Assembly: GCF_002113885.1 (NCBI RefSeq)
Contig: NW_018407700.1
Coordinates: 2,893,877-2,957,876 of the forward strand
DNA from: Mizuhopecten yessoensis
Taxonomy: Eukaryota
Length of the DNA: 64,000 nucleotides
Direction of reading: 5' to 3'
This document shows positions 4,301 to 40,203 of this stretch, in pieces. The notes under the pieces are model-generated. The model did not search any database. It saw nothing but the letters and a program-made list of their open reading frames with translations, and had not been told where the DNA came from. Position 1 is the stretch's first letter. The number at the start of each line of letters is the position of its first letter. A program made the position numbers and the translations under genes.

Positions 4301-7282
4301 GATCTCCAGGAACTAGGAGGGGCTAAAAATAACAAAAATGGAATGTATTGTATACTCAAATGTATTAGTGCATGTGTAATATTATTAACAAGTGTTATCT
4401 GTAGGTCTGAAGTTATATGAAGGGTAATATAATGTGACAATGTCACAACGTCTATCCAATGAAAAAGAACATACATTTGGTTCATTTTGAAAATTTTCCA
4501 TTAATTATGAGATCCTTTATAACAAATTGGGAGCAAGTTTTAAGAAAAAGTTTAATTACATGCCTTGTAACAATATTAAGAAAAAAATAATAACACATAC
4601 CTTTTCACCGTTACCCTCTGAACATTTTTGTCCAATTTTCTGAAGATTGTCTTCTTTACGCCCAGTTAAAGCTAAACTGGCACCAAGTTTTGAAAACAAA
4701 GCAGCGGTGGCTGCTCCAATACCAGAACTAGCTCCTGTAAATAGAAAAATTAATTAATAAACCTTGACTTTTCTGAATGTTTGGAAATAGACTTGATAAA
4801 TATGAACATTCTAGGCCTATTGATCACACCAGTAATTATTTTACTATGATTTTTGAATTAGTGTCACAGTATATATATGCTGTTCTTGTATATTCAAGAG
4901 TCTAAAGAGGGGAACCTATACGATAGTGCTGGGAAGATGATCAATTACAATAAAAAAAATGATCGGTTTGTCCTTTCTGATTCCAATTTTTGATTACAAA
5001 TTCCTTAATCTATATAATCGGTTCATTAATGAAAATATTAAGTGTTAGATATATACAATGTAACGTATGCATTGAAAGTCATTTATTCTGATGATTTTTA
5101 CTCTATAATTGAATAACCCGAGTAAATTTAAAATATCTGATAGTACTTGATCCCTTAATTCACTTCAGGAAATGTTTCACATTATATACAGAACATGTAA
5201 TTTGTCTTAACTCAAAGATCCCTGTGCACTGTATTAGATGTGTAGAGTATCCACAATATAGACCTACATGCATTGAATAAATAAGACTAAACAAACGTAC
5301 ATGAATAAATTATAAGACGTATACCTACATGTACAAAGTGTATTGTCATAGGAATCTGATATTTAGTCTGTAAATCAGAAAGAAAGATGAACAGAGATAC
5401 TAGCTCTGCTTTATTTTCTCTATACATCTCTTATTCCATAGTGTATAGTAAACATCAAATTTCTTCCAGATTGGCCTCGTTGACATTGGTTAGAAAATAA
5501 GGTAATACACATTGGTAACGTCACACTACCACAATTGGTACACTACCCAAATTGGTACATGGTCAGAAAATTGTTCGAATAGTACTTTAAAAATTAAATT
5601 TGAGATTTTCCTTTGACAGTATAACAAAAGAGGTATTTATCAGCATTTAAGCTGAATAGTTTTGTTCTAAGGAACATTTTAAGAGTAAACGATGACTTCA
5701 AAGAAAACACATCAGAAAACCAGTAAAAACGACATAAGTCGACGAAATTTTGGAGGATTTTCAAGGGGTTATAAATATAAGCATGTTTAAATGTTAATTT
5801 CTGGTCCTTATAACTGGATTATATAAAAGTCAATATATACAATTATAGTTCAGTATGGTATCTATAAAAGCAATATATTTTGTTGTAATCGGCACATATC
5901 AACTTGTAGAAATAAAAACAAATCCTATAGCCAGTGATATGGTGTATCAATTTGGGTACTAATTACGGCCGAAAAACGGATGAAATCTCACTCCGAGTTT
6001 AGCGTTCTATTTTCAAAAACAAATTACTTAGATATAAAACTTTTCCTGAAAATGAACCACCATAAGTAGTCTTTGTCAAGAATCAAGAAACATTCTAGAT
6101 ACATGATCTGAATTTTTAAAGATCACTAAAAAAACTGTCAAAATTGTACCAATTGTGGTAGTGTGACATTACGGCTATTTTCAAAGCCAATATAACAAAA
6201 TCTAAAAGTAAATTTCAGCGCATCAAAAACTATGCTTATAAAACTGGTATGTCCCAAAATAGAATACAGTGCCACAGTTTGGGACTCTCACAATATCTGT
6301 CATGCTGTACAGAATCGTACCCAACTTATATGCACTCGCTCAAGACATCACCAGCTATATGCCCTCAAACAATAAATGCAAAACCGCCAGATATTGCTAT
6401 AACAACTCATTCTCTGCTAGAAGTATAACCCTGTGGAATCTCCCTCAGACTTTGGTGTCTGCTAATTGACTCTAGTACTAGTACTGTTGATGCTTTCAAA
6501 GCTGCTTTCACAGTTCTACATCTCAGATTATAGTTGTAAGAGGTACATGTACAGATCATCTGTACATATACCTCTCACAACTCCAGATCACCCCTGTTTA
6601 TAATCTTTTATCATATACCCTATTTAAAAAAAAAAAGTGTGCTTTTTAACTAAGGCCAAGTGGAAAAATAATCTAAATTGATGGAATCTAGTATCAAAAA
6701 GAACACAGCTTTCCCAAGTTCATAATTCATACTACCTAATTATCTTCTAGCCTGAGTTTCCTCTTGCCCTTACACCAGAATAGGACATTTTGACTGATAT
6801 ATGTCTGGTGTAGCAGACACCTTTTTGTCAAAATGTCTTAGTCTGGTGTAAATTAAGGCAAGAGGAAACTTGCAGGTCTTAGAATTATCCAACTGATAAA
6901 TGCATGACAACAATGCATATCACGCACAGCACAGAAGTCCGAAATTCTGTCAATACTTAATAATACAAGTGATATGAAAAATATATCATACATAAGTACT
7001 ACATTTTTTTTTATGTAAGTATTATAAATTATTGACATTCAGACTCCTCTGCTTACAGTTACAATCAAGCTAACAATGCTTTAACCTTTGTCGAAAAGAT
7101 CTATGCTAGACTTGATTTCACCGATATGACGGTTTAAAATGATTACGAAATCTTTCAATATAAATTTGCCATGGAAAATGCAATGGGCGTTACACAAGTG
7201 CTCGGCTGCATTATGACTCTGCTGTTGTCATTACCATACCTGTTATAAGGGCCACTTTCCCCGACAGACTGGACGCAGCCAT
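1313..7282 (-). CDS. Classical short-chain dehydrogenase/reductase (FabG-like SDR); 8 exons in the window, 3' end outside it
   Basis: Exons 7282-7240, 4734-4601, 4322-4230, 3763-3678, 2977-2884, 2594-2525, 1844-1808, 1376-1313. All are GT-AG with consistent phase (207 codons). Translation: MAASSLSGKVALITGASSGIG (TGxxxGxG)...LNILVNCAG...FNVNV...GNIVNVSSV...AYNMSK (YxxxK)...ELAPKQVRVNSVNPGVIIT. Confidence 0.95.
2335..3156. repeat. ~145-bp direct repeat pair (2335-2478 and 3011-3156) in SDR introns 6 and 4
   Basis: Both copies read GAGCAGTGTAAGGGAGACAACTGG...TTTAGATAATGAGTTCATTCAATTTTCAATTA with scattered differences. Confidence 0.85.
5518..6169. mobile_element. MITE with ~25-bp TIRs and TA target duplication (Tc1/mariner-like)
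   Basis: Left end TA|ACGTCACACTACCACAATTGGTACA; right end TGTACCAATTGTGGTAGTGTGACAT|TA; no ORF. Confidence 0.8.
6172..6510 (+). mobile_element. Degenerate CR1/L2-type LINE RT C-terminal remnant
   Basis: Fragments read like AYK.LV.PKIEYSATVWD and YNNSFSARSITLWNLPQTLVSA...TVDAFKAA, typical of CR1/L2 ORF2 ends. Confidence 0.55.
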
Positions 7283-7816
7283 TTTGTTTTCCTGTGTGAC
7301 GTTGGATTCCAAAGTAAAACAAGAAACGACACGTATAAAAAGTCCGCAAAGATTTAATATGTGCATGTAAAATCATGTAGACCACATGCAGTAGACTGGG
7401 TTTCATTTAACGTCGGGATTCTTGGGGGGGCTGTCTTAGACATTGTATCTGAATGAATCCTCAACATTTACTCATAGACGTCTATAATAACCAGAAAAGA
7501 GTTATTTTCATGTATACATATATTAGATATTAGTGCACAAACTAATCAAGTCTACACTGTTGAGGTCATGCTGATAACCTATCACTATGTCGCATCATCC
7601 TTCACAGTTAAACAGCAAACAGTAGCCAGATGTGCTATACTTAACGCTATCAAATCGTCAATGTGTAACCCCATACCACTGACAACGTTTATCTTAAAGT
7701 TAACTAAATTACTACATGTAGGCACCAAATGCAGGCTACCCTACCAAGCAAACATAGATGATCGACATAAATACTGTATATGTAGTATAGATATTATTTT
7801 TTGGTGATCAGTAAGA

Positions 7817-10800
7817 ATGACGTTATATACACTGCTGCTAGTGTGTGTCGGGTTGCTGCTGCAGGTAACCACACGATGTAATTGTCACCTATGTCTCATC
7901 TCACCCCGACAGCGGGGCGACATGGATATCTCCTCAGTAAGTATCAACCATCCCCCACCCCTCCTCTAGGTGTACCTCCGCCCCAACCCCACCACCGTGA
8001 CCAAATCCCTCCCTCGTACAGTAGTGTAGTATAAATGCATGAATACAGTGTAGTATTGTTCCCTCTTAGCAATTCAACGGTTATGCCGATAGGCTCTGTT
8101 AACTTCGTACTACGTTCAGGCGGAGCCATGTAACAGATGATTTTAATCAGATTGATGTGCCATGATACGAGTTATCTATCGCACGGATATTTAATTGAAT
8201 TTGTGTTTTTATGTTTATCGTCAATAGCACGATACTGACGGGACAACAGTCTGACAATCACAGTCATTCCACTTGTTAATTAATTGTGAAGCGTTATATT
8301 GGTGAATGAATGACAGAACACTATATAGCAATTTAACAGGGGTTTGAACGTGCGAGTAAAATACTCACTAGAATACTGAGTAAGGAAGATATACAAATGT
8401 AGTTTGTCGAAATGACAACGGCTCCCTCTATAACAGCATTATTGAAACGCCGGATAATGACTTATCTTCAATTGGCGACCCATCGTTTCCCCTTTGTTAC
8501 AACAATTTCCTTCTAACATGTATGTGTGATACTCCAGTTTATGAATAAATCATCTACAATAAGTATGTTCTGATGAACAAAAGGAACGTTTTATTCGCAA
8601 ATTTGAGGTTCTTCATTTTTATTACTTTTGTCTCATATTGTTATATTTTCTACATACACGTAATTTTACAATATTTGGAATCGGGTTGCACATGTTTGTG
8701 TTGCATCTTTCCAGCCTGGAAGTCGTTCTTGTAACAGGAACATGGCGCCATGTGGCGGAATGTCAATAGAAAGACCAAGTGGTAAACCTCTCATCGGTGG
8801 GCAACTCATATTTCTGAAATGGCAGCAGAACGTCAACCATTACGAAGTCGGATATCCAGGTTTGCACCGAAATTCGTTTCATAGCCGTTGTATTGGCCAG
8901 GTATGACGCAAGTGTTGACATTGTTAGAGACCACAAAGGAATAACTTATATACTATCAACTTTCCTGAATGGCAAGTCATGAACTCCGTATACCACTGTC
9001 ACATTTGGTCTGACTAAAGGCTAATCAAAAGAACCAAGAAGACTTTATTAGAAATGATACAAATTTAACAATATTGCAATAGGGGCAGATCAACATCGGT
9101 CTGTTAAATGATCACGAAGTAGCGGGCACAGATATAAACATTTAATTTTCAGAGTTTCATATCAATTGTCTCTTACAATAATGCTATGGAAGATATATCT
9201 ATCCTCTGTCAACAAACCTACAGAAGGGATGGCAAAAGTAAATATATTAACTTGGCAAAAGTAAATATATAAACTTCCTCTCTCTAGTCTACAGAGGGGA
9301 TGTCAAAAGTAAATATATTAACTTGGCAAAAGTAAATATATTAACTTCCTCTCTCTAGTCTACAGAGGGGATGTCAAAAGTAAATATATAAACTTCCTCT
9401 CTCTAGTCTACAGAGGGGATGTCAAAAGTAAATATATTAACTTGGCAAAAGTAAATATATTAACTTCNNNNNNNNNNNNNNNNNNNNNNNNNNNNNNNNN
9501 NNNNNNNNNNNNNNNNNNNNNNNNNNNNNNNNNNNNNNNNNNNNNNNNNNNNNNNNNNNNNNNNNNNNNNNNNNNNNNNNNNNNNNNNNNNNNNNNNNNN
9601 NNNNNNNNNNNNNNNNNNNNNNNNNNNNNNNNNNNNNNNNNNNNNNNNNNNNNNNNNNNNNNNNNNNNNNNNNNNNNNNNNNNNNNNNNNNNNNNNNNNN
9701 NNNNNNNNNNNNNNNNNNNNNNNNNNNNNNNNNNNNNNNNNNNNNNNNNNNNNNNNNNNNNNNNNNNNNNNNNNNNNNNNNNNNNNNNNNNNNNNNNNNN
9801 NNNNNNNNNNNNNNNNNNNNNNNNNNNNNNNNNNNNNNNNNNNNNNNNNNNNNNNNNNNNNNNNNNNNNNNNNNNNNNNNNNNNNNNNNNNNNNNNNNNN
9901 NNNNNNNNNNNNNNNNNNNNNNNNNNNNNNNNNNNNNNNNNNNNNNNNNNNNNNNNNNNNNNNNNNNNNNNNNNNNNNNNNNNNNNNNNNNNNNNNNNNN
10001 NNNNNNNNNNNNNNNNNNNNNNNNNNNNNNNNNNNNNNNNNNNNNNNNNNNNNNNNNNNNNNNNNNNNNNNNNNNNNNNNNNNNNNNNNNNNNNNNNNNN
10101 NNNNNNNNNNNNNNNNNNNNNNNNNNNNNNNNNNNNNNNNNNNNNNNNNNNNNNNNNNNNNNNNNNNNNNNNNNNNNNNNNNNNNNNNNNNNNNNCAAAA
10201 GTAAATATATTAACTTCCTCTCTCTAGTCTACAGAGGGGATGTCAAAAGTAAATATATCAACTTCCTCTCTCTAGTCTACAGAGGGGATGTCAAAAGTAA
10301 ATATATTAACTTCCTCTCCCTAGTCTATTAACAATGGTATGGTTAGTTTTTGAAATATCAATGTATTTTCTGTAACAGTTATAGATAGACACACCGTTGG
10401 GAGACATAATCATTACCATTTATGCAGTTGAAAGGTTCATTTGGACGTTTAACACAATGTGTTACAGGCTATATGGATATTCGCATTGCCAATGTGACGG
10501 GGGATGACTTTATGTCTCTACTGACGTTCGTTCCTGACGTTAACATGTTCACACAGAATCACCAGCAAAACTTTACTGCCATTTCTGTGAGTATCATATA
10601 ATACTTCGTCACTTCCATGAGTATACACTCATCAGATAACAAATGACCGAACTATAAAGAATCATTACGAAGTGCCTACCTGTAAAGTCATCATGTGGTA
10701 TCAAGCGAATGCATCAAAGTAAATTATATTGTTTATAGCAATAGGAAAACAATGTTCGTTCTTCAACTTGTTATTTAATTTGTATTAAGAGCTTTAAAAC

Positions 10801-13800
10801 AAATGGAGTTTAATCTAGCCAGCAACATGCGAACTTCATTTCAGAAAATATCACGCAATTATAAAAAAAAATAATTGGAGCATGACTGAGTTGTAATATA
10901 ATGAAATACGGCGGGGCATGCTTGTCTATCAACTTTGAGCCTAATTCGTTTTGTGACAAAAAATGTTTCTTACTCTATCACATGTTGGTTCTCAAAGATT
11001 ATCCCTCAGATTCCGTGTCGTCACTGTATCATCATAGCAAGGTACCAGTCACACAAACCCGGAGAGTCGACATTCTATCAGTGCGCTGACGTCAGAGTCA
11101 TTACAAACTTCAGCAGTGGCGCGACACCCGAAGTTCTGCATACTGATCCGAGCTTCAGAACGGCTAACGCAGTTTATGAACTTCACAAATCCTCACCAAT
11201 GCGAACAGAATTAACAGACACAGTCCGTCTTCAGGGACTCGTCTACAATGAATTTGAACCGGATCGCATTCACTTTGTAAATATTTCATTGAACACCGGT
11301 TTTATTCAAGAACTGAATACATTTGACATTGGTTTGGATTATTCTGCGAGACGATCTCTCCAGCCAACAAGTGGTAGAGATCCAACGATCCTACCCTTTA
11401 AAATGAACTTTTTAATTGATGGGATTGTGGCTGTAAATCGCGAATCAAACACCGTTTTAACAGTTTATCATAATGGTGGTTCAATGGATGACGTTGCCAG
11501 TAACGTAATGGCGATATACACAGATAACGGAGAGTTGAAATTAACCAAACCAATTCAGGACTTTGACGGCGTCCCAATAAGTGCATTGGTATTCGTGAAG
11601 CCCCAAACTTACGCCTCCTTCAGCATACAAGAGGATCATGACAATCAGGGTTTGTCTATCAATTCAACTCAAGTTCAGTAAGGAGATGCTCGAAAGGATG
11701 CTAATGATGTGAATTATGCAAAGTTCAATTGTTCGATAAGATCATTGTAAATATTATAAGAAAATTATGATATTTATGTCTTTTCATTTCATAAAAGCAA
11801 AGTACATCTGTTGTTAATATTGCACCACAGGTACTAGCCTCGTCTGTCAATACACCTATGATATAAGCAAGGTTACTATATATTTAACTCCGTCCCCCTA
11901 GTAAAATGACCTAGTTCCAGAAAACATGCGATTTTGTCATAACCGTTTATAGTCTGACGCCGGGAGCAGTCGAGATCAACAGGAAAATAATATTTCTTTA
12001 ATTTGATGTATGAGTTGCCATATATCATCCAGTATGATTTTCGGTAGACTTCATGAAACATCGAAAAATAGTCGAATTTCAGTTGGTCGGACACTGTGCT
12101 GTCCACGGGATGACACGCTAAATTCCTAGTGGGTAGCGCAAAACACCCCCATATCCGCTATTCAATGTCGGCACAGTATTTCTATGATTGGAAACAAACT
12201 TACTTGTATGATTGTTCATGGCCCAACATTATCATGTCGGACACCCGAATCCAGTTTTCAAGTTGGTCAGGCTGACGATCGGAAATCTGAACAGACCTGC
12301 AATTTTCTTTAACTTTTGTGATCTCTGCCCTGATTGACTTCTAAATCTAACGGACCGATCAGAGCCGAGGTCACAAAAAATAGATGAAATGGCAGGCTCT
12401 TTTAAGATTTCCGATCGTCAGCCTGACCAGCTTGTAAACTGGACTCGGGCGGAGTTAGCAACCTTACCTATATTATAGGTGTATTAAGGGACGAAGCCAG
12501 TACATGTGATTGCACTGATCAATTCCTTATGTTTTTAGGCAACTTTTACTTTATCCTTGGGCAAATCACCATCGCTCCGACAGGCGACCTAGTCTACTCA
12601 CGAATATACAAGAGCAACACCACAGAGGACAAGTACATGAATTACAAGTGGTCAACCTATGATGTCACCACTGGTATTATGTATGTTTTGATGGACCGAG
12701 ATGGCTCAGCTACTCCGGATACCCGAATATACACATACAGCGTCACAAACAAGTACATAATTAGAACTCAATTTATGTAACATGGTATTCACGGCATTTA
12801 TAGCAAATCATAAGTGATTTACGTTATCATTTTACATTTCAAGGGGTCGTGATCACTCCTTGACTAATAGTAGTACTAGAAATACATTTTTGTGCTGATT
12901 TGTTTGGAGTTTACGCTGTGATTTACGCGATGTGCTTCGGGTAATGTACATTGGAATTTACTGATGCAGCTTTCCAAATTTGGTGTTTGTAAAACTATAT
13001 ATCTCATGACAGTTTATTTTAGAATTTACGGACTTTATCCTATATAAATGATTAAGATCGAAGAAATATGTAAAGATTCAAATATTGGTGTCGGTTCATA
13101 AAACCTATGTAATTATGGTATTTTTACCCAATCACTATACGTTTAGTATGCTGGTAATGACATGGTGTTCAATACTAAACTATAACGATGAAATGTTACT
13201 TTCTGTCGCACTTTCTCTTTGAATTCGTTCTTGGCGATTACTAATTACTAGATGATTACCCGATGAACATTTCAGACAATAGTCCTGTATCTTCCTGATT
13301 TCTGTATTCAAATGCGAAATTCAAAAATCTTTATTATTAAATTCTAAGGATTTCCCGGGGCAATTTTTCTTTTTGTTTTGTGAACGTCCTCACAACAGCT
13401 AAGGTGACATGAACACGGTATCTTGGGAAGACTCGGCAGATAGCCTAGAACAATTATACCTGTCCTTTAAAATTCTGTTGAATATTCATTGATTCATCGT
13501 GAAAAACGAGTCCACAAGACAACTAGAATACAATGTCTTTTAATATTAAATCCAACAGATATTTAATGACAGTGGTTGAAGTACGAAAATGCGGATACGA
13601 TATTGCATCCATGCATGTCTTTCACCCTCACGCCTCCAGTAAAGGTCGTACGTATATTGCACATAGTAACGTTATAATGTCATCAAAATAATCGCAATAC
13701 CAGAGATTCTGTTCGCTGTAATATATATTGAACGCCTTTATCTCTATATGTTATTGAAAATAAAGTTATTTTTATTTATAAAAATACACCAATCGGTGCC

Positions 13801-16800
13801 AAACATTTATCTCTAATTCGAGGTAACTCGAATGAGTTTTCACACTTCACAATAATATTCTTTTGATATATTTTGTAATTTTTGCGAATACTTTGCAATG
13901 TTTGTTATATAGAATCTTGCCTACATTTGCTCACGGAAAAGGACACATATCAATGTGTTTGAACTCTCTTCATTCAATACAATTATTGTGACAATGAAAG
14001 AATGCCCTGAAATCCAATTGTTCAGCAAATAACTTGTCTAGATATCAATGTTTTGCCAGCCCAATTGATGGTTTCCTGAAATTATACGAATGCGCTAAGT
14101 AACTCACAGGGCAATATAAAAGATTGAATTCGGTGCAAAATGGACCCCCATTTTGTGTCAAAGTTCAATGTTATTCCAGTTTTCTTCTAAAGCTAATATG
14201 ATTCCCGACCCCTTTTTCCAGCCTACCTTAACAGCTTGTTAAGTCCACTGTGTTGTTTTCTGGCCTGGCTTTACAGCTTGTATAGTCCACTTCCTGTTTC
14301 TTAGCCTATCTTTACAGCTTGTGTAGTCCATGTTACTGTTGCTTAGTCTGTCTTAACAGCTTGTATAGTACATCACCTGTTTCTTAGCTTACCTATATAG
14401 TTTATATAGTCCACGTCCTGTTTCCCAACCTACATTTACAGCTTGTATAGTCCATGTTACTGTTTCCTAGCCTACCATTACAGCTTGTATAGTCTATGTC
14501 ACTGTTTTCTAGCCTACCTTTATAGCTTGAATAGTCCATGTAACTGTTTCCTAGCCTACATTTACAGCTTGTATAGTCTATGTTACTGTTTTCTAGCCTA
14601 CCTTTATAGCTTGTATAGTCAACTTCCTGTTCCCAAGCCAACCTTTACAGCTTGTATTGTCCATGCTACTTTTTCCTATCCTACATTTACAGCTTGTATA
14701 GTCTATGTTACTGTTTTCTAGCCTACCTTTATAGCTTGTATACTCAACTTCCTGTTCCCCAGCCAACCTTTACAGCTTGTATTGTCCATGCTACTTTTTC
14801 CTAGCCTACCTTTACAGCTTGTATAGTCCACGTTACTGTTTCCTAGCCTACTACCTTTACAGCTTGTATAGTCCATGTTATTGTTTCCTAGCCTTCCTTT
14901 AGAGCTTGTATAGTCCATGTTACTGTTTCCTAGCCTACATTTACAGCTTGTATACTCCACGTTACTGTTTCCTCATCTACCCTTTCATCTGTTTCCTAGC
15001 TTACCTTTATAGCTTGTATAGTCCAGTTCCTGTTCACCTGCCTGCCTTACATGTTACTGTTTCCTAACCTTCCTTTATAGCTTGTATAGTCCACTTCCTG
15101 TTAACCAGCCTGCCATACATGCTACTGTTTCCCAGCCTACCTTTATAGCTTGTATAGTCCACTTCCTGTTTTACAGCATACCTTTACAGCTTTTATAGTC
15201 CATGTTACTGTTTCCTAGCCTACCTTTATAGCTTGTATAGTCCACTTCCTGTTTTACAGCCTACCTTTACAGCTTGTATAGTCCACGTTACTGTTTACTA
15301 TCATACTTTGACAGCTAGTATAGTCCACTTAATGTTTCTTAGCCTACCTTTACAGCTTGCGAAGTTCATATTGCTGTTTTCGAGCCTACCTTTTAAGCTT
15401 GTATAGTCCACGTTACTGTTTCCTAGCCTACCTTTACAGCTAGTATATTCCACTTCCTGTTTCGTAGCATGTCTTTATAGCTTGTATAGTCCATTTTCTG
15501 TTTCTTAGCCTGCCTTTACAGCTTGTATAGTCCACTTTGCTGTTACCTGGCCTACCTTAAAGCTTGTATAGTCCATATTGCTGTTTTCCAGCCTACCATT
15601 TAAGCTGGTATAGTCCACGTTACTGTTTCCTAGCCTATCTTTAAAGCTTGTAAAGTCCATATGGCTGTTTCTATTCTACCTTTTCATCTTTTCTTAAATT
15701 AACAGTTTACATAGTCCTCTTTGGTGTTCCTAGCCTATCTTTACTTTTACATCTTTCTAGCGACGAAGTCCACTTTGCTGTTTCCCCTTGCCTTTGTTAA
15801 TCAGCCTTCCTTTATAGCCTATATATAGCCCATTTAACTGGTTTCCAGCCTACATTTACTCTAATCCAGTTCTACTTCCCAGTTTACCTTTACAGCTAGA
15901 CACATTTCACTTTGCTGTTTCAAAGCCTTTTTATAAGACTTGGAACTCGGTTAACGTTGCTATTTTCCGGTCAACTTTACCTCCTTTCACACAGGCTACA
16001 TTGTTGTTTCCCAGGGTACATAGACCATAAACGTTTTGATCAGTACCCTCTGTTGTTTTTTCAGTCTACCTTTACAGCATTGCTCCTGAAGGACCCCTCT
16101 GGAACAGAAGACCGCCGTGGAGCCTTATTAAAATGGACCCTCTGACTGGTGACGTCAAACCTGTTGCCCACGTTGCTGAAGCTGGTGCGCAACTTTATTA
16201 AGACCTAAGCAACACATGTGCATTTATTGTGATGGAATATATAACAAAGTTAAGGATTTGTCGGGAAAATAACTATCAAAGGCAGTTCCGACCTCAGATT
16301 ATTATTTTGCAAGATTTTCGAATCACTTTTTGAACAAACATTTTTCACTTGATGCATATGTATTCATCACAGAACAAGCTTCGCATTTTCAATTATGTTT
16401 GATGTGTTAGTGAGTCCCTATTCTGTTTGTTTAATCTTGATATATTTGAGAAACTTGATTTTTAATAAATAAAATGTGTCGTTACATCGCAGCATGGTGG
16501 AATAATATATATATGTTCCCTTGCTTATGGCACCAAATAAATAAAATGACAAAACTTAGATGATGCGTAGATGATGTTCATAATTCTCTTTCCTGTCTAA
16601 GATGTTACATAAATATGAAGCAGTATGTCTTTAAGGTGTACCACAAGAATGACTGAAATGTACAATGTATCAACATTTCCTAAGTTCCGTTGTTATGCTT
16701 ACTTTTCCAGGATTATTCGACAGATATAATGGGGGAGCTGTAACCGGCGGATTGGACCAGACCTCTGGAATGCTATTTCATATACTCCGGGTTTCGGATA

Positions 16801-16907
16801 CAGTGGCTGATATAATAGTCAGTGTAGATATATATCAGAGAATGGTACGGTTCTCACGACTAACCAATCTTAGACACGTACATAATAGGTTTCTGTCCAA
16901 AACATGA
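7817..16907 (+). CDS. Secreted protein with N-terminal His-brace LPMO-like (copper-binding) domain and probable C-terminal beta-propeller, ~550 aa
   Basis: Exons 7817-7936, 8715-8859, 10468-10586, 10998-11649, 12539-12752, 13559-13644, 16065-16184, 16711-16907 (1653 nt, all phases match). Signal peptide MTLYTLLLVCVGLLLQVTTRCNC, then HLCLISPRQRG...SCNRNMAPCGG...WQQNVNHY...PCRHCIIIARY...STFYQCADV. Confidence 0.85.
9215..10326. repeat. 48-bp minisatellite (AGGGGATGTCAAAAGTAAATATATTAACTTCCTCTCTCTAGTCTACAG) spanning the gap 9468-10195
   Basis: The same unit lies on both sides of the N run, with some 21-bp internal duplications. Confidence 0.9.
11826..12508. mobile_element. Non-autonomous P-superfamily-like DNA transposon, 683 bp
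   Basis: TIRs of ~50 bp: CACAGGTACTAGCCTCGTCTGTCAATACACCTAT... and ...ATAGGTGTATTAAGGGACGAAGCCAGTACATGTG. Perfect 7-bp TSD ATTGCAC at 11819-11825 and 12509-12515. A CANRG terminus with a 7-8 bp TSD fits the P superfamily. Internal ~60-bp inverted repeat at ~12244-12306 / ~12387-12450. Confidence 0.85.
14205..16078. repeat. 42/39-bp minisatellite (GCCTACCTTTACAGCTTGTATAGTCCATGTTACTGTTTCCTA), ~40 copies, intron 6 of the LPMO-like gene
   Basis: Clear periodicity that degenerates toward the exon-7 acceptor at 16064. Confidence 0.9.
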
Positions 16908-19900
16908 TAAGCTGGTGTGCAAGCGCACGGTAAGTGCTATTGTTTCAAGGCTTTATACTCATTGCATGGAATGTCCATACGGTTGGTGAATCTGATATTA
17001 CATAATAGATGGAATTTGGTAATAAGTTCGAAAAAAAGAGATAATAGAAACGATATAGGATGAATAAATAAATAAATAAAATCGTTCATTGTTAAAATAT
17101 TATCAATGATTTGGCTGGTGAGATTTACTGGTGAGAATACTGTGTTGATTGATCAATAACACTGTGACGTTTCCATCAACATAATGTAGGAAATAGCTGA
17201 TTATGTAACAAAGACGTATTATTTTATTTATCATGCTTAGGTTCAATGAATCAGTATATAAAAAACTGAACGAAGGAAAATGTCGCCGAATTTTTCAGTT
17301 TTGCGATGAAAATTAAGTATCATATCGATATAAAATGTATACAATCGAATTGATTATGTGTAATTATACGTATTACAACAGTGTCTACATTAACTTCGTC
17401 ATTTAAATAACAAATAGAACATTGTGTGTTCTGCTTAACTTGAAAATCCGAAAAATATTAAGAAAAATATTAGGAAACATTAATTAAAAGCAGTATTTTA
17501 TGTATGTATTTTCAATCTCCTATATTTTCGTCTAATATCCTCAAAGAAACAGGAAAAGCTACTCTGCAATAAATAAAGGACACTACAACAACATCTCAAA
17601 ATACGAATTACATTTAGGTTTTTTTTTTTTTCATTTATCATATAGCAGATACAGTCTATCTCTATTCAGTTTCTCATTTTTTTTAAAAACTATTCCCAAC
17701 TAATTTGTCCAACCCTTTTTGACATTTAACTATTTACTGGTAAAACATAGTCATAACACAATTAACACTGCACGCTGATATTGTAGACTTAAAACAAACA
17801 TTTTTATATTATTTGGATAAAAAAGAAGTATAGTAGATTACAGCTGTGAAATTAGATAAAAATCAATGCTTTCACCTTCCAACAAACTAAGTAAATAGAG
17901 GGATAGACTGTTGTTCGATTAGTGATACTATTACAATTACACATTACACTGTTTGAAATGTAATCATAGCTCTTTTTAGATGTGAATTTTAATATCCGCT
18001 TAAAGTGATATAATGTATCAGAGGTCAGGGAAACCACCAACTAAATCAAAGCACTTCGCTGAAGTTGACCCTAGAATTAGTATCTGGGTCACAGAGTGTT
18101 ACTCAGATTAGATACTTGACTTGATATAGATTTCTTTGTGTCTACATAACATGTACGAACAAATACTATTAATCATAGGATAACATACATGTCTTAATCA
18201 ACTCAGTTTTATTATCTGGAACAGTATCTAAAAGTTAGAACAATTGACCTTGTAGCCTTGGGTATTCTTAATTATCTTTTTACAGACCGAAAGTCATGGG
18301 CTATATTAATCATTATTATCAATCAGTATGACTTTACATTTTCACACATTATAGCAGGTAAAAGTCACACCAGATATCCGTATACGAGTAATCAATGGTC
18401 ACAGGTTGAACTCAAAAAGTGTACTCAAATTCTGAATATGTCTATCTCACATTATACAAAAAAATATGTACAATTTATATTTTTATTAGTCAAATATAAT
18501 CTTACAAAATGTAAGATATAACGACAGTCTTATATGCATGCTTTCATCCTTCACAGGACTCTTCGTAATCATAACATACTCTTAACTCTTTCCATAGACG
18601 AATTGAAAAGCGCAAAACATCAACTGTTCGGCTTTCACTAACAAGTATATATTTCCGTGCAAGCGTTAGAGTCTGGTCTGTCAGTAGTTCTGTGTGTAAT
18701 ATATTTGCAAATAAATTCATACACTATATTACAATTGGGTTGATTTGTACCATTTACGATATGTTCGTAAAGGATATCTTTTATTAAAAAAAAAGAGATA
18801 AAGAAAACATCTTTTAAGCAAAATTGAGATATAGACAAGATATCGTATGCCTTTTATCAGATAACCTGTGTCATATATTTATTATACCAAATATCTCAAT
18901 GTTTAAATTGGGCATTTAAATTAATTTAAAATAGATATCATATAAAATAAATTTTTATATGAATAATCAATGCATCGAAAGACAAGACCATTGCACATGA
19001 TATAGTCAATACACGAGGTCGAAATCGACAATCTAATCGACACTGAACAATCAACACCTGGAACCAAGGAAACACAATCAGAAAAAGGCATATTAGTCTA
19101 TCAAAGATAAATATGCCTATTTACATTGTACTGTTCCATATTTCATATATGCATGAAATATGCTATACTGTATTTTAATTTTGTTTTGAATTATTTTTGG
19201 CATGTATTTATTTGTTCTGCTCTTCAAACTTGACGTGAAATTAAACAGTTTACAAACATGACAATCACCAACGTATGATATCAACTACAGTCAAAATATA
19301 AATTTCTGTTATGAGAATGCACAGCAGATGTGATGAGGCACGCATATGTATACCTTTTAAATGTTCCCAGTGAACCCTGATGGTTATTCCGTTTGCTTGT
19401 TTTTTACTACAATATGAAGCAATGGAAAGAGAGGAAATGTTATCTAATTATATATGTAGATATAAATTAATTTCATAATCAATCAAAAAGTCAAAGGAAA
19501 GTAGGAATTGGATAAAAAACAAAAACAAACAAAAACAAAAAAAACCGGTGATAATCTTTTGATCTGCCAAAATACAATTTACCATTTGCTTTGGTTCCAT
19601 ATTGATATTCAGGTCATTTATGAAAAATGCATTTACATAGGAGCTAATTTAACCATTCTGTCCCCTTTTAAATATATCAATGAGGAGATATATATGGAAA
19701 GCTGCACACTCGTAACGGTAAACCTGTTTTAAAACACACTTGTATGCGATCTTATCATAGGTACTTCTTAGAAGACTAATTTGTTGTCTAGAGGTCAAAC
19801 CTTGACCGGGGATGAATGCTATATCTGTGCTACGTGAAAACATTATTTATAACTTACATCGGATGAAATGTTTTGTTTGGTGTAAATTTAAAAGGGGAAA

Positions 19901-32300: not shown

Positions 32301-35300
32301 CACAAACATGATATTTTAATGAATTTCATATAGCTATACATCATTATAACATGTCATTCAATAAAATCATGATCAATATATCATAATGATGACATATACA
32401 TTGTTTTGCTCATATATGTTTTTTTAGAACACACGTACGTATATCATTGAATATAAATATATTAAATTGCACATTATATGTATTGCAAATTTTGTTTTAT
32501 TACACATATTCATTTTTTTGCTCATAATATTTTAATTTTATCATAATTTTTATTGAACATATTTTTGATTGGACGTCCATATATATAATGCAAATATATT
32601 TACTTCTATTAAATACAAATACAAAATATTGCATATATATTTACAATTGTTGAATAGAGACACGAAATATTGAATATATTTACAATTATAACATACAAAT
32701 ATAAATCAATTTACATTTATTGCAAAAAAAAAAAAAATCAACCATGCGTTAAGAAAATATTGAATTTTGCAAAGTTTGACATGTCATGTGTGAATTTGAT
32801 TTCACAAATTTTATTTGCTCCAAATATCAATCTAGACCTTATGGTAGAGTTGATGCCTGATGTTCTTGTTAAGATACTCTTACATGGTTCTGATACAATA
32901 AACGAAGCCTCAAACAAAATAATTTTTGATCTTGAGATTCTAAATGTCTCCGTTTCTATCTCTCTTCTTTCTTTTCTCTTCCCCTTTCCTTTCTGTAATT
33001 GTGTGGGTGTCTAAGTGAAAGCGTGTGAATAGGTGTCATATATGTTTCATATAGATCTGTGTCATATTTAGTCATTGTACATATTGTATTGTTTTGTTAC
33101 ATGTTGAGGAAAGCATCTAGTAGCCCCCGGGCTGTATGCAATCCTCGCTACAGAAATACATAATTAAACCAGATTTTTTATATTCTAGGATCGGACAACA
33201 TTGGGCTTCTTTTTCTGCAAGCGAAAAGGAAAGGTATATTTCCGCAACTGCGGAATCAAGACCTGGTATTGTTGAAATGAAACCACTACATAATGGAAAG
33301 TCAAGACATGGTAACGTCACAGTTGGGTCAAGACATGGCATTGTTGAAGAACAGCCACGAGTGAGTGCCGACTCAAGGCATGTTAACGTCACAGCTGGAC
33401 CAAGACATGGCATTGCTGAAGAACAGTCACGAATGAGTGCCAACTCAAGGCATGGTAACGTCACAACTGGACCAAGACATGGCATTGTTGAAGAACAGTC
33501 ACGCGTGAGTGCCGACTCAAGGCATGGTAACGTCACAGCTGGACCAAGACATGGCATTGCTGAAGAACAGTCACGAGTAAGTGCCGACTCAGGACATGGT
33601 AACGTCACAGCTGGACCAAGACATGGCATTGCTGAAGAACAGTCTCGAGTGAGTGCCGACTCAAGGCATGGTAACGTCACAACTGGACCAAAACATGACA
33701 TTGCTGAAGAACAGTCAAGAATGAGTGACGGGTCGAGGTATGGTAACGTCACAGCTGGGCCAAGACATGGCATTGCTGAAGAACAGTCACGAATGAGTGC
33801 CAACTCAAGGCATGGTAACGTCACAACTGGACCAAAACATGACATTGCTGAAGAGCAGTCAAGAATGAGTGACGGGTCGAGGCATCGCAACACAGCTGGA
33901 CCAAAACATGGTATTGTTGAAGTAATGTCACGAGTGAGTACCGAGTCGAGGCATGGTAACGTCATAGCTGGACCAAGACATGACATTCCTGAAGTGAGGT
34001 CACTAGTTATTGCCGACTCAAGGCATAGTAACGTCACAGCTGGGCCAAGACATGGTATTGCCGAAGTACAGTCACGAGTGAGTACCGACTCGAGGCATGG
34101 TAACGTCAAAGCTGGACCAGGACATGGTATTGCTAAAGTGAGGCCATTAGTTAGTGCCGACTCAAGGCATGGTAATGTCACAGCTGGACCAAGACATGGT
34201 ATTGCTGAAGTAAAGTCACGAGTGAGTGCCGACTCAAGGCATGGTGCCGGTGGTAAGTGAAATTAAGTACAAGTCGATGTTGAGCCCAACGGCAACCATG
34301 GAACAAATAAGGTTGAGTTATTCAAGAACCGAGAAATAACAGTAGGAATAAGTCAATCATAAGTTATGACATCATACCAAACGGACAGTTATAATGCTTC
34401 AGTCACATTTGCGCCGGCCGCCGACCAGGAAGTATAGGAATCGGCCGGCTTCCCGGGGACTGTTATAAGCCTTGAGTATGGTCACATCAGATACGGGCAC
34501 CGCACGGCCCCCGCAAAACAAATGCCGGATTAAATCGAACGGACATCTGAAGGATATCGTAGGGAGCCCAAAAGACTATCGCAAGGATACCGCAAGGCTA
34601 TCTGACGATGGATGGGTTGTCGTACGGTGGCCGGGGAATGCTGGTGTAACGGGCGGGATACGTACGTAGCCCGTACGATATAAAGGGAGGCACACAAGTC
34701 AGCACCTAGCTCGTCCGTGAGAAAATGGCGCCTGCAGATGTCCGTATGTGTTTGAGGACATCGAGCGGCTACCTTATGATGGCCGTACGGCACTCGGCAG
34801 GACATCGGGCGGTCTACAGTAAACCTGGGAGCATGAAAAATTGTACAAAATCCCAAGATGACCGGACGATGCTACCGGGAGCCGTAAGATAATCTTAGGA
34901 AATCATTGCAGGACACTTATGGGAGACTGCCGGGTAGGTTCCGATAAGTTTGGGTCAGAAAAAATCGGGGGGACACCGGCAACTTCTATCTCCGCGCTAA
35001 AATCTCCCGGCGACCCATGTTGCGTCTAAAAGTCGGCCGATAGTGGCCGATAATCTCCGGGCGTCCTTATATAATTACGATTCCCCGGCTTGTCGACCGG
35101 TTTTGGCAAAAAAACTCATCGCCCGGGCGCCTTTTCGGAAATCGGCGTAAATGTGACTGAAACAGTAGGCGGAGTCTTTCTTGATCAAAGACATGCATGA
35201 TGCATGGTACCAGTACGGTTGAGTCATTTTTAAATCAAAATGTTAAACCAGACATATGTATTGGTTATAAGAGTTTGAACATTAAGCACGAATCCGAAAC

Positions 35301-38300
35301 TGATGTACGAATCCGAATCGAATAGGAGTAATTATTGTTCACTTTGTATCAACACTACACCAGAGAAGTATATACGAACCACAGATAAATCAAATATGGT
35401 TTAATGTGCAACTTAACTGCCAAAGACGTCCTTAATAATATTGAATTACCATATTAACGATTTATTGGATACTAGTTATGACTCATTATTTCTACCAAAC
35501 AGATAAGGATATGGTTACCGATTCGGATTAATGCTAAATGCGAAAACTCTTACAAGCACATAGTCACTAGTCATGTACTTCTGAACAAATAGTTAGTGCT
35601 GAAAAGGGTAAGTGGCAACATGGGCTCCAGACGTGGTGCCAGGTAATACTGATAGTGTTACCAGTAAATATGATTATTTCTTGGTCTAAACATTGTTCAA
35701 GCATTTAATCGTCAATCATCATATATACGACATCCGTGATATGTTTTTCTGTACGATATTTCTATCTGTGCAAATCAATAACATTGCATCCGTTTTACAT
35801 CAAGTTCAACACATTTAAAAAAGGCGTTTCAATTACCATCGATTTGTATTATTGCTTATATTGCCAACGTCGTTTAAAAATATTAGCAACATATTGTATA
35901 TGACAAAAAACGTATAATATGACCATTTACACATGCACCATACACTGTATCAATTCGCGATCCATATCGGCCCGAAGTCTAAACTTGATACGGATATGAA
36001 TTTGGAAATGGTTGTATGATAATCGTGTATTGAACTTTATCACAGCAGTTCCGGAAATAGAGTTATATCTGAGTAAAAACATGGCACTGGTAAGTAACAC
36101 TGTCTCTCTACTGAATTATTTTTATTCCAATTGTGTTGTTTGCTCTTCTTCTCTTCCTACAGATAACTCGTCAAACGTGGGAATTTCATGCATGTATGGA
36201 CGGACCGGTGGTAATCAGTCGCATACACCTCCCACTGACCACAAGATAAAGTCTAGATACAAGAGTTCATATACTTCAGATGCATTAAACTGGACATACG
36301 AGCGGGCTGCTACATCTCCAGTACAAGTAAGCCTATATTTTATTGTTGTGGGCAGTGATAGGGGGAACATGTGAGTATGCTTGTAGTGAGCGCAATGAAA
36401 ACATTAAACACACATTTAACCAATCAGTCAAGTTATAACGTTCATTTTCGAATTTCAACCGTTTTGATGTTTTCAATGTTTTTGCTGTCCGTATCTGAGA
36501 ACTTCCTTTCTAATTTTGAATATGAATAATAGCAAATTTCGTTTTAGATCTTAACACTACAATATCAATATTAAAAAATGATGAGCAGATAGCACGAGTA
36601 CATTGAGCGGAAAACGATAACAACAGATTACTATTCTCGTCATTGGACGAACATAATGTTTATATTTGCTGTCGATTACACACGTACTATTGTTCTTTAT
36701 TGCGTGAAAGCAGAACAAAAAGAGCGGACGAAACGATGTCACGAGAAGACATATATGCTGTCATGTTGTGATTTTTATAAACATCAGATGCCACAACTTA
36801 AAATATTTGAAGCTCATATTTTGTTTTCTTTTGACCAGTAGAATACAATCGACGAGGCCTCTCCAAAAAGGAGTTAATCTAGGTCATATCATATAGGACT
36901 ATATCTATCATATACAATTAACCAGGAATAAATACGAATATTATGAAATAATGGCTACAAAGCCATACTTATGTGTGTGACTTAAAGTGTATTGTTATGT
37001 GATAAAATAACCTGTAACAATGTCAAATAATGAAAATTTTATATAAAACGTCTGAAGATTTGTTGAACACTATAATAAGTTTCGCCTGGTATGTAATGAA
37101 TGTGCATACTCTTCGTTTCTAAATGATTTTCTTTGTTTCCGTTGTAGATTGATCAAGTCTCTCATGTTAATCTCTCCCGCTCTCAAGTGCTACATGAAGC
37201 TTCCTCAGTACCGAATGAAACACAACCTGATTTCTTTTCTTGTGCTCACGATACGATTGCAGGAGATTCTAATCACCTCAAAGTCAATACCTCACTTGTG
37301 GCATCAACGGAAGACGTCACCAGAGGTTGCCGCGAATCAGAAATCATAACAGACGGGAAACGTTGTCCTCGAACTTTATCCGACCCCAGGGGAAGTTCTG
37401 AAGCAAGTATAACTTTAAGAGACAAAATTCCTGTGTTAGCACCCCCTCCAACGTGTACATCAATCACTGTCGGCCTAGGCTGGGAGTATGCCGGAACATC
37501 TTTTGCAAATGTGGTTTACAAATCAAGTAACAGCAGCAATGCAAAATGGTCACAGTTGCCAAACTTTGATGGCAACAATGTGTGTACATCTGTTTCTTCT
37601 TCTTGTGTAAGGAGTCATATTGACTCTAAGTGCAATGACAGAAACGATCCTGTTAACTCAAAGGCGACTGAGAAACAGAAAATGTGCAGGAGGAATGAAT
37701 CTAATAGTGCAGCAAATAGTAAAAAAGAAAGAACAAAAGACGGAGGGGTTTCAAAATTAAGAGCTAAACGCATTCAACCAAAGTCTCCGAGAGCTTGCTC
37801 CGCTATCGGTTCAAATCAGGACAGTCAAATGACTGGATCAATACTGTTCAACTCAGGAATCAAGATGCAGTATAGAAAAATACTTCCTAAGCCGTTAAAT
37901 GTAACAGTTGAAAAACCAGCAGATCCAAACATAGAATCGTTGGATCAAAATCCAATACAAGAGGTGGATTTTAAGCAATCATTCAAGATAAAAGATGAAA
38001 TGAACCAAGAAGGCGTCTTACTTGCTCCTCGTGATGAGACAACAATTGAAAGTGTGCATTTAGATTCTAGAAAGCAGAATAAATTTGAGAAATCAATAAA
38101 ACTATCGCGTCCAAAAGACGAAGTCTTTGCGTCGATTAAGAGGTTCATAAGGGAGACAGATGATCCAAAGCAATCTACGCAGGGTCAACCAACAGAGAAA
38201 TATAAGAAATTCAGCAATGAGGACACGAATTGTACCACGAGGTGGGATGGGAAGGAAGATCTGAAGATCAGGGGACCTCCTATATGCAAAACCTTTGGTT

Positions 38301-40203
38301 TGAAAGAAGATAAATCAGCAGCGATTTCCATTTGCGAAAAGCAGAAATACAAAGTTCTTATTACCAGAGGGACAGACTGGGATATATTGCCAATTAAACA
38401 TAAATCACCTGTACCAAATCTAGTATCCATATTTTCTCTGCAACCGGAAGTTAACCTACGGGAGAAAAATGATACGAATGGCAGCAGCGATGAGAGTCTG
38501 GGAGGTAAGTCAGGAGTGCTAGTAACGTCAATAGGATAAGTCTAGGTGTTTTAGGGATGAAGATAACTGGGAGTCGTCTGGAAGATATTCTTAGGTTTCA
38601 GGAAGGTATATAAAATGTTGTCGGGAAGGTGTGTTTAGGGGTGTCAGGAAGGTATTCCAGGGGCAGTGAGAAAGCTCAGATCATTTAAAGACGTATCTCC
38701 ATGCGTGTAATGTATGGCGGCATGATGACGTTTGACCTCCTGCAGTCCTTGTGAAAGCGCGGATCTGATGCCGACTTTAGAGTGCTACCTCAGTGAAACA
38801 TCATGCCAGAGGCTTGCATCTAGCACAGTATTCAACATATTACATTTTTCGTTAACCGAAAGCAATAAAGAACACCCTTATGCGTACCTTCCTGATATCC
38901 CTAGACATACCGGGACGCATCAAAGTACTAGTTGCTATTCTCTGCTGAACGTCCAGCATTTAGGCTAATCACGACTGGTTTGACCATTATTAGTATAATG
39001 TAACTACTTCTGTTTAGAAAATACTTATAAAACAAAAATCTAAATAAATATGAAGTTACGATTAGCCAAGGGCGCATGAGTTTGAATTGATCTTTATGTT
39101 GTGTAGACATGGACTTTCTGATGGAGGGATGTGACTCACCCATGTGGTTCTCATCGGGAAGTAGTGGAGCAGCCAGTCCTCCGTGTGCTAGTAATACAGG
39201 TATGTTACTTAAGTCGAAGACATAGTGTACGTACTTTAATGCTGTCAGTGATGTGTTAGCATTGTGTGTAACGAGACATGAACAGAGAGATATTGAAAAA
39301 GTTGTGTTTTGTACGAGTCACTTTTATCTCATTATTCTATGTAAACAACCTAACACGCACCATTGCACGGAAGTCATAATACATTTTATGCACAGTTAAG
39401 TATATAAAAGTCAATTTTATTGTACGATGATTGTGATATTTGGCATGGAGAGTCAGGAGGGGTCAAACATTGTTTTACGGAAGTCAGAAGGAAGATTTCT
39501 GTCTCAATTATTGTTCACATTGAACGTATATTTTCAGATACCATTTGAAAAATGGGAGCTCTGCTGTTCTACAATAGCTATTGTTTAATAAATATTTGCA
39601 TTGTGTTCAGTTTTCTTTACACAAACCATTTAGGAATTTCGATTTGTAAGATTCTCTCTGAATGATTGGCCAACCCCGTTAAAATAAATAGATCACTATA
39701 AATATTCTATTTGCTAATTATCTGTGACATTACACACGGGCGTTCTGGTTGGCTGGGCTTTTGTAAGACACTTCACTACCATTACGAGTGTCCAGTTTAT
39801 TGTTCCTTAACGATTTCTGTTGAAAACTCGGTATATTTACAAAAATGTATATTAAAAAAGACGATATCTTTACTAACGGACATAATTATGGAGGTTATTT
39901 CAGATCGCTACCCTAATCATGTTTTGATATTTCGTAGACTTGACAGACCGTACTGTTGGAGACTGTACTGAAGCACTCATCATCCACCCCGTTGTTTCAC
40001 AGCTGCTCCAGACAGATTGCTCTTCAAGTGTTGATGACACAAATTCTTCGGACAGTTTGCAGCAGTTGCAGAAAGGTTATTGTATTGGTTCACCGTCTCA
40101 TAAGTCAGTCATTAAAAATGTGTCTGATACAAGCCCGAACGGACCAGGAACACCAACTCAATCTGACGATATCATAGCCATGCAGAGTTTATATCACTGT
40201 TAA
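26364..40203 (+). CDS. Divergent HMG-box protein with internal 24-aa tandem repeat and long low-complexity tail, ~1070 aa
   Basis: Exons 26364-26511, 31966-32086, 33189-34252, 36163-36326, 37148-38504, 39107-39199, 39938-40203 (3213 nt, phases consistent). Spliced HMG box: RIRNCMNAFVNFTKKVRPYYKSKYPTESFYGTTRRIGQHWASFSASEKERYISATAESR. Exon 1 is the least certain. Confidence 0.75.
26664..27275. mobile_element. MITE (~610 bp) with TIR TAAGG..GCAGTACCCAAA.CGGATC
   Basis: Left TAAGGAAGCAGTACCCAAACAGGATC with a second GTACCCAAATCGGATCAC; right GTGATCCGATTTGGGTACTGTCACCTTA. Confidence 0.65.
27667..29745 (-). mobile_element. 5'-truncated CR1/L2-clade LINE with frameshifted RT ORF2
   Basis: ORF pieces DISKAFD, GVPQGSVLGPLLFLVYI, LFANDT, VFEYACEVWDGC, FIPSSIRLWNDLP, CACGNECENAVHYFFDC. 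A 3' UTR with AATAAA and poly(A) ends at 27667. Confidence 0.92.
30713..31005. repeat. Two short hairpin/foldback elements (30716-30812; 30893-30961)
   Basis: AATCCATCCCTGA...TCAGGGATGGATT; GGCTAAGATT..ATCCCAATC..GGC TTAT GCC..GATTGGGAT..AATCTTAGCC. Confidence 0.55.
31069..31190. repeat. 17-bp minisatellite (CCAGTTATCGTGATGTA), ~7 copies
   Basis: Direct periodicity. Confidence 0.8.
31486..31739. mobile_element. Foldback element whose ~39-bp arms are a SINE-core-like motif
   Basis: TGTGGGAGGAAACCGGAGTACCCGCAGAAAACCCACGTG ... CACGTGCGTTTTTTCCGGGTACTCCGGTTTCCTCCCACA. Confidence 0.65.
32855..33175 (+). mobile_element. Short 3' fragment of a CR1/L2-type LINE abutting the exon-3 acceptor of the HMG gene
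   Basis: VKILLHGSDTINEASNKIIF resembles the C-terminus of the 28004-28285 LINE piece (VILYGSPNLSDEDNENIF); followed by a pyrimidine-rich UTR and tail. Confidence 0.5.
33301..34245 (+). repeat. Coding 72-bp tandem repeat (RHGNVTAGPRHGIAEEQSRVSADS), ~13 copies
   Basis: Inside exon 33189-34252; frame preserved, with one 23-aa unit. Confidence 0.95.
34396..35163. mobile_element. GC-rich MITE (~770 bp), possibly PIF/Harbinger-like
   Basis: TIRs GCTTCAGTCACATTTGCGCCG / CGGCGTAAATGTGACTGAAAC; sharp GC rise against the flanks. Confidence 0.75.

Follow-up and report, generated by a model that had tools for sequence, protein, structure and literature searches.

Introduction

To our knowledge, the histidine-brace proteins known in animals are the lytic polysaccharide monooxygenases (LPMOs) of family AA15. 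According to PMC5823890, these are domains of about 195 residues with ten conserved cysteines, an alanine at the His-2 position, and an axial tyrosine; about one-third of the members carry C-terminal extensions, and the text consulted mentions no propeller among them. The other close reference point is X325/Bim1, in which X325 has a histidine brace with no detected polysaccharide activity and Bim1 acts with Ctr1 in copper uptake (PMC7924993; PMC10952591); the fourth copper site of X325 is filled by an aspartate, and Bim1 is a glycosylphosphatidylinositol (GPI)-anchored, fungal protein (PMC10952591). Here, we describe a predicted secreted protein encoded by an eight-exon gene located at positions 7817 to 16907 (+ strand) of a 64,000-nucleotide stretch of the genome of the scallop Mizuhopecten yessoensis (the window; contig NW_018407700.1). 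The product is the 551-residue RefSeq protein XP_021362906.1 (P0050; LOC110456456), annotated as "uncharacterized protein." We consider it very likely that this protein joins a secreted histidine-brace domain of the LPMO fold to a six-bladed β-propeller, an assessment that covers the structural and site assignment and does not extend to an enzymatic role.

The RefSeq protein was reached by a HMMER search with the largest exon, after which the exon translations were compared with the matched proteins. The search queries were single exons or the identical database protein.

Predicted fold and copper site of the N-terminal domain

The N-terminal domain (residues 24 to 168; 145 residues) was modeled with AlphaFold2 on an alignment of 32 sequences, yielding an all-β sandwich with a pLDDT (predicted local distance difference test) of 89.2 and a pTM (predicted template modeling score) of 0.85. 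When the model was compared against the PDB with Foldseek, the first matches were AA10, LaX325, fusolin, AA11, AA16, and AA15 structures, and the 23 matches with an E value of ≤0.001 were LPMOs or LPMO-like proteins, except those at ranks 16 and 23. VIA-align placed TdAA15A first (Z, 12.3; root mean square deviation [rmsd], 2.6 Å over 128 residues), followed by LaX325 (Z, 11.1), SliLPMO10E (Z, 10.3), and CBP21 (Z, 10.0), and all four alignments pair model residue 1, that is, His24, with the N-terminal histidine of the target. The predicted structure shows the immunoglobulin-like β-sandwich fold of LPMOs, in line with the LPMO-like domain that an earlier note made from the DNA letters alone had proposed. 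In the view of the same note, the domain was closer to the short LPMO-like families than to AA15. That judgment holds for the domain size, which is that of X325, and for the top Pfam match, BIM1-like (X325), but not for the structural comparison, in which AA15 and LaX325 nearly tie.

In sequence searches, the N-terminal domain matches the Pfam BIM1-like family with 27.0 bits, exactly the cut-off of 27 (E value of 7e-6; residues 4 to 140 of 145 covered), and LPMO_10 with 20.3 bits, under the cut-off of 23. Across the family, 25 of 32 members match LPMO_10 and 22 of 32 match BIM1-like at an E value of ≤0.01, and the full-length homologs that were scanned score 12.7 to 25.6 bits against the latter. 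Searched with single exons, Pfam returned sub-threshold hints only, the top one being BIM1-like with exon 4 (E value of 0.16), and a single-sequence search of the PDB sequences with P0002 returned only noise in the form of mitochondrial ribosomal proteins (E value of ∼0.01). When the family profile was searched against all PDB sequences, only LPMOs were retrieved (7okr, E value of 0.0078; AoAA13, 0.16; 5ftz, 1.0). In the profile alignment to 5ftz, the chain of which starts at residue 30, His82 falls on chain residue 91 (His120) and Phe154 falls on chain residue 164 (Phe193), which we take to be the second brace histidine and the axial phenylalanine of that enzyme, respectively. Phe154 pairs with the phenylalanine of the AFYACSDV motif in 5ftz and with a tyrosine of AoAA13 (4opb).

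Conservation was analyzed in a set of 34 full-length homologs. Each of the residues His24, His82, and Phe154 is present in 33 of these, as would be expected if the two histidines form the brace that the earlier note had assigned to them. The six cysteines of the mature domain (C26, C46, C53, C135, C138, and C157) are present in all 34, as are Gln156 and Asp159. Invariant Asp159, five residues beyond Phe154 on the strand, corresponds to the structural aspartate in the C-x-D of AA10. The sole exception at the predicted brace positions is P0061, a 535-residue protein from a Logan contig, in which His24 is replaced by Gln, His82 by Tyr, Phe154 by Leu, Glu151 by Gln, and His49 by Tyr, all together. 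That they were lost as a set is the strongest indication in our data that these residues form one site. The window protein itself keeps every invariant column of the family, but has Ile in place of Arg141.

P0061 keeps the fold motifs and the propeller and appears to be a natural, brace-less derivative, one that could serve as a negative control.

In all 34 homologs, a hydrophobic leader of 13 to 29 residues ends directly before the position of His24; the residue at −1 is always Gly, Ala, Cys, or Ser, and that at −3 is always small or aliphatic. The window protein has no hydrophobic segment besides this leader.

The predicted C-terminal propeller

A second model was built for residues 185 to 551, of which residues 204 to 551 were assigned to the C-terminal domain. 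It has a pLDDT of 90.6 and contains 24 strands arranged as 3 + 5 × 4 + 1, which corresponds to a predicted six-bladed β-propeller whose last strand completes the first blade. A linker of ∼35 residues with two short helices separates the two domains. The earlier note had suspected a propeller in this part of the protein from six recurring blade-like motifs; in the model, each of the six lies in a different predicted blade.

The top structural matches are likewise six-bladed, namely, the YWTD propellers of ROS1/Sevenless and LRP6, kelch, NHL, and TolB, with Z scores of 16.5 to 19.8 over 250 to 295 residues at 6 to 12% identity. The match list declines smoothly, and no family stands out. Tied for the top is the lectin propeller of an Umb toxin bound to teichuronic acid (Z, 19.1), a match that is compatible with glycan binding by the predicted propeller. 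Pfam gave no match to the propeller of the window protein; among the homologs, two propellers touch DUF6923 and two touch DUF4394.

Gene structure and transcription

The open reading frame starts with the ATG at 7817 and spans 1,656 nucleotides, that is, 551 codons and a stop. All introns of the eight-exon model have GT..AG borders, and the exon-by-exon translation, including five split codons, matches XP_021362906.1 without a single mismatch. The eight exons anticipated by the earlier note, the positions that it gave for His24, His82, and Phe154, and its count of six cysteines all agree with this model and its translation. The features of the locus are as follows (window coordinates).

7817-7936, + strand: exon 1, residues 1 to 40; identical to the RefSeq protein; junction from 7936 to 8715 in a spliced contig
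7817-7885, + strand: predicted signal peptide, codons 1 to 23, ending in CNC; sole hydrophobic segment
7886-7888, + strand: His24 codon (CAC), predicted to open the mature protein and to act as the N-terminal brace ligand
8715-8859, + strand: exon 2, residues 41 to 88 plus one base; contains PCGG and WQQNVNHY; RefSeq protein and RNA contigs
8838-8840, + strand: His82 codon (CAT) within WQQNVNHY, mature position 59; predicted second brace ligand
9468-10195, no strand: assembly gap (run of N) in intron 2, inside an array of 48-bp tandem repeats (9218-9466 and 10196-10327); noncoding
10468-10586, + strand: exon 3, residues 89 to 128; RNA contigs join 8859 to 10468 and 10586 to 10998
10998-11649, + strand: exon 4, residues 129 to 346; CRHC, HKPGE, FYQCADV (end of the predicted histidine-brace domain), linker, and predicted blades 1 and 2
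11073-11075, + strand: Phe154 codon (TTC) within STFYQCADV; aromatic residue predicted to lie axially beneath the copper
12539-12752, + strand: exon 5, residues 346 to 417; predicted blades 3 and 4 and the degenerate LMDRDGSA motif; RefSeq protein and RNA contigs
13559-13647, + strand: exon 6, residues 417 to 447; junction from 12752 to 13559 in runs X1 and X5
14215-15690, no strand: minisatellite of 41- to 42-bp units in intron 6; noncoding
16065-16184, + strand: exon 7, residues 447 to 487; exact match to the RefSeq protein, GT..AG; outside the read coverage
16711-16907, + strand: exon 8, residues 487 to 551 and TGA stop; exact match to the RefSeq protein; outside the read coverage

The RNA evidence consisted of contigs from three studies and one raw RNA run (X22), compared over positions 7750 to 13700. 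Five of the seven junctions are supported by RNA contigs (exons 1/2, 2/3, 3/4, 4/5, and 5/6), and all five occur within one contig of run X1; run X7 supports exons 3/4 and 4/5, and run X5 supports exons 4/5 and 5/6. Because the contigs skip GT..AG introns, they must derive from spliced RNA. The exon 6/7 and 7/8 junctions were placed by identity with the RefSeq protein, the canonical splice sites, and the alignment with homologs. The raw run X22 showed zero exon depth over the compared interval, so that expression appears to be low or restricted to certain tissues. The locus is an intact, transcribed gene, and its uninterrupted frame and splicing show that it is not a pseudogene.

The assembly gap leaves the coding sequence untouched. 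Intron 2 (8860-10467) encloses the whole run of N, and Tandem Repeats Finder detected the same 48-bp unit on both flanks (9327-9466 and 10196-10327), which places the gap inside the repeat array. A 1,203-nucleotide spliced contig of run X1 crosses the gap, joining 8859 to 10468, and the alignment of the 34 sequences runs without a missing block through the invariant GYPGYMD motif that spans the junction of exons 2 and 3. A hidden exon in the gap was considered and is ruled out by the same contig and alignment. Also rejected was a model with the donor at 8900 and the acceptor at 11010, given that RNA and homologs yield a donor at 8859, an exon at 10468 to 10586, and an acceptor at 10998.

At the latter site, two in-frame AG acceptors lie 12 nucleotides apart (10996-11009), from which exon 4 could start at 10998 or 11010. 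According to the RNA contigs and the spacing in homologs, the acceptor at 10998 is used, adding the residues IIPQ. One X5 contig represents an unproductive or unfinished form, with the donor at 8900 (41 extra bases, 8860-8900, out of frame) and intron 3 retained (10587-10856).

The minisatellite in intron 6 comprises ∼36 copies of its unit, which includes CTACCTTTACAGC, the string that opens exon 7 at 16066. Two intronic stretches (8114-8155 and 11826-11866) reach an RNA-contig word depth of up to ∼1,000, with numerous loose ends and strand-switch joints; both probably represent fragments of dispersed repeats that are expressed elsewhere, and neither has an Rfam match or a local inverted repeat. 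An Rfam scan of positions 7000 to 18000 gave zero matches. Outside the gene, the window contains a second assembly gap of 88 N (43078-43165) and further long open reading frames of 354 to 531 codons (33117-34260, 37187-38539, and 60843-62438) that may be genes of mobile elements.

Distribution of the family

The same two-domain layout is conserved in a malawimonad, in choanoflagellates, and across animals (sponges, molluscs, annelids, echinoderms, and amphioxus). Proteins of this kind, 507 to 575 residues long, were found in scallops, oysters, mussels, clams, abalone, and limpets, in the annelid Owenia, in sea stars, a crinoid, and a sea urchin, in amphioxus, and in the sponge Sycon; beyond animals, they occur in two Salpingoeca choanoflagellates and in the malawimonad Gefionella. 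Stand-alone forms also exist, that is, relatives of 150 to 190 residues with H-x-C...P-x-Q-R-G, N-H, and FYQCAD motifs, in Sycon, Bugula, Acanthaster, Elysia, and several transcriptome or metagenome sequences. A quick maximum-likelihood tree broadly tracks the species tree, and no bacterial or archaeal relative was detected by a pattern scan covering one genome per species or by tblastn. Two candidate relatives, P0028 and P0033, were discarded because Pfam shows them to be unrelated repetitive proteins. The family is old, vertically inherited, and eukaryotic. Its age, the unusual degree to which the brace domain is conserved, and the joint loss of the site residues in P0061 would point to one conserved, copper-dependent function.

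Nearly all members are annotated as "uncharacterized," and the assignment corrects such annotations in many marine invertebrate genomes. One Pinctada member appears in UniProt as "Chitin-binding type-4 domain-containing," which indicates that automatic annotation already detects the domain in some members.

M. yessoensis has two paralogs. LOC110467303 clusters with the genes of Pecten, Argopecten, and Ylistrum, each of which has one copy, and the window gene is sister to this group, with a terminal branch of 0.75 compared with 0.17 + 0.21 for LOC110467303. In other scallops, no ortholog of the window protein closer than 52% turned up. The window gene is a fast-evolving paralog within scallops, and this copy may have a shifted or relaxed function.

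Proposed function and alternatives

The predicted structure suggests the following scheme. Signal peptidase would cut between Cys23 and His24, whereupon one copper ion would be held by His24, through its free amino group and its side chain, and by the side chain of His82, with Phe154 lying under the axial position. Three disulfides formed by the six invariant cysteines would stiffen the sandwich, and the second shell may include Glu151, Asn79, and Gln156. The propeller would position a substrate or a partner; this would most likely be a glycan, either from microbes or algae that the animal ingests or from its own extracellular matrix.

Our tentative preference is for an LPMO-like, copper-dependent oxidative enzyme over a copper carrier. 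A more specific form of this proposal is doubtful at present: an ancient holozoan or eukaryotic copper monooxygenase or peroxygenase, representing a new family of the auxiliary-activity type, with its substrate chosen by the propeller and consisting either of microbial or algal wall polymers (in filter-feeding digestion or defense) or of something other than a polysaccharide. If a propeller-guided monooxygenase or peroxygenase acting on a nonpolysaccharide substrate is indeed what these proteins are, the known histidine-brace chemistry of animals would become wider. Action on ingested cell walls is a guess, suggested by the occurrence of the family in filter feeders and bacterivorous protists, and the involvement in algal-wall digestion, the shell matrix, or immunity that the earlier note suggested is speculation.

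Several observations weigh against assigning the window protein an intact copper site and an LPMO-like activity. Both the juxtaposition of His24 and His82 and copper binding are predictions, and the matches to LPMO families in sequence are at or under the curated cut-offs. The c-region of the leader, QVTTRCNC, is long and contains an arginine; in this paralog, cleavage could instead occur after Thr19. At the position of His49, which is His in 31 of the 34 homologs, the window protein has Asn, and its LMDRDGSATPD is a degenerate version of LMGNENxPD, the best-conserved propeller motif of the family. Expression is low, with the transcript absent from the sole raw RNA run read, and the branch of the window gene has roughly twice the length of the branch leading to its paralog. 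Finally, the mean column identity of the N-terminal domain, 59%, is unusually high and atypical of polysaccharide-active LPMO families, a pattern that could reflect a small substrate or interaction with another protein.

The alternative that survives best, although we regard it as rather unlikely, is a noncatalytic protein for copper binding or transfer like X325/Bim1, in which the brace captures copper and the propeller docks to a receptor or transporter. Such a carrier would fit the top Pfam match (BIM1-like_dom), the X325-like size of the domain and its Z score against LaX325, and the precedents of an X325 brace with no detected polysaccharide activity and of Bim1 working with Ctr1. The high degree of conservation in the domain would be in keeping with a conserved partner protein, and the closest propellers by Z score (YWTD, kelch, NHL, and TolB) are mostly protein-binding modules. 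However, the protein lacks a GPI-type hydrophobic C terminus, and the family has a conserved acidic second-shell candidate, Glu151; a conserved acidic residue in the second shell is more typical of active LPMOs. Moreover, the aspartate ligand of X325 could not be mapped onto this family, in which Asp159 instead corresponds to the structural aspartate of AA10.

It is improbable that the site or the whole protein is decaying in this paralog, leaving an LPMO-fold binding protein or pseudoenzyme with no copper chemistry. The long terminal branch, the distance to any ortholog found in other scallops, the H49N and R141I substitutions, the degenerate propeller motif, and low expression would all fit decay, and brace-less P0061 shows that such derivatives exist. 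Nevertheless, the frame is intact over eight exons and correctly spliced, and His24, His82, Phe154, Glu151, Gln156, the six cysteines, and all invariant columns are retained.

Least probable by far is a lactonase-like propeller that hydrolyzes the aldonolactone ends produced by C1-oxidizing LPMO chemistry, such that the fusion couples two catalytic steps: the first Foldseek match of the propeller is a putative 6-phosphogluconolactonase, with others following, and the polar residues D269, N380, E400, N401, and H544 are conserved in the family, but these Foldseek matches have an rmsd of at least 9 Å and belong to seven-bladed families, propellers of the lactonase type have low ranks by Z score (SGL 2p4o comes at rank 38 with 14.9, compared with 19.3 at the top of a list that falls off smoothly), and E400 and N401 are lost in the window protein.

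The copper-dependent oxidative enzyme remains our preferred, if tentative, reading. Whichever of the functions applies, the family provides a defined, expressible target for work on LPMOs and copper biology, in which the choice between enzyme and copper carrier can be addressed for brace proteins outside the CAZy families.

Comparison with known histidine-brace proteins

The best structural match to the N-terminal domain is AA15 (TdAA15A; 5msz), with 20% identity in an alignment that begins at His1. AA15 LPMOs and the window protein are both secreted animal proteins (the latter by prediction), with an N-terminal histidine following a leader, an H-x5-P-x2-R start, and a second histidine after the central strand. 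Unlike AA15, the N-terminal domain has 145 residues, six cysteines, Val at the His-2 position (Tyr, Phe, or Leu elsewhere in the family), and a predicted axial Phe. By size, cysteine pattern, the residue at His-2, the axial residue, and the LPMO_10 score, it falls outside the definition of AA15.

X325/Bim1 (LaX325, 6ibh/6ibi; PF20238) resembles the domain in size and is its top Pfam match, and the brace established in X325 is predicted here. The window protein differs in lacking a hydrophobic C terminus and in carrying a propeller of 350 residues, and its relatives are holozoans and a malawimonad. The definition of X325 does not apply to it with respect to the anchor and the taxa (animals, choanoflagellates, and a malawimonad), and the Pfam score is borderline.

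AA10 proteins (SliLPMO10E, 5ftz; CBP21, 2bem; AsLPMO10B, 7okr) share the fold with Z scores of 10.0 to 10.3 and have a similar F-Y-x-C-x-D-V strand, W-Q-x3-H segment, and axial Phe. They differ from the window protein in that sequence similarity is marginal (E values of 0.0078 to 1) and that they are larger, have a helical loop-2 region, and are mostly bacterial or viral. For the C-terminal domain, the six-bladed propellers of the YWTD, kelch, NHL, and TolB types offer a common fold with the low identity noted above and no Pfam assignment of the window protein.

A literature search for the gene identifiers and for a brace joined to a six-bladed propeller found no paper describing either. The proteins described here would constitute a second, compact brace family in animals beside AA15, and their N-terminal domain is most suitably classed as a new family, or else a new variant, among the LPMO-type histidine-brace proteins, set in a new architecture.

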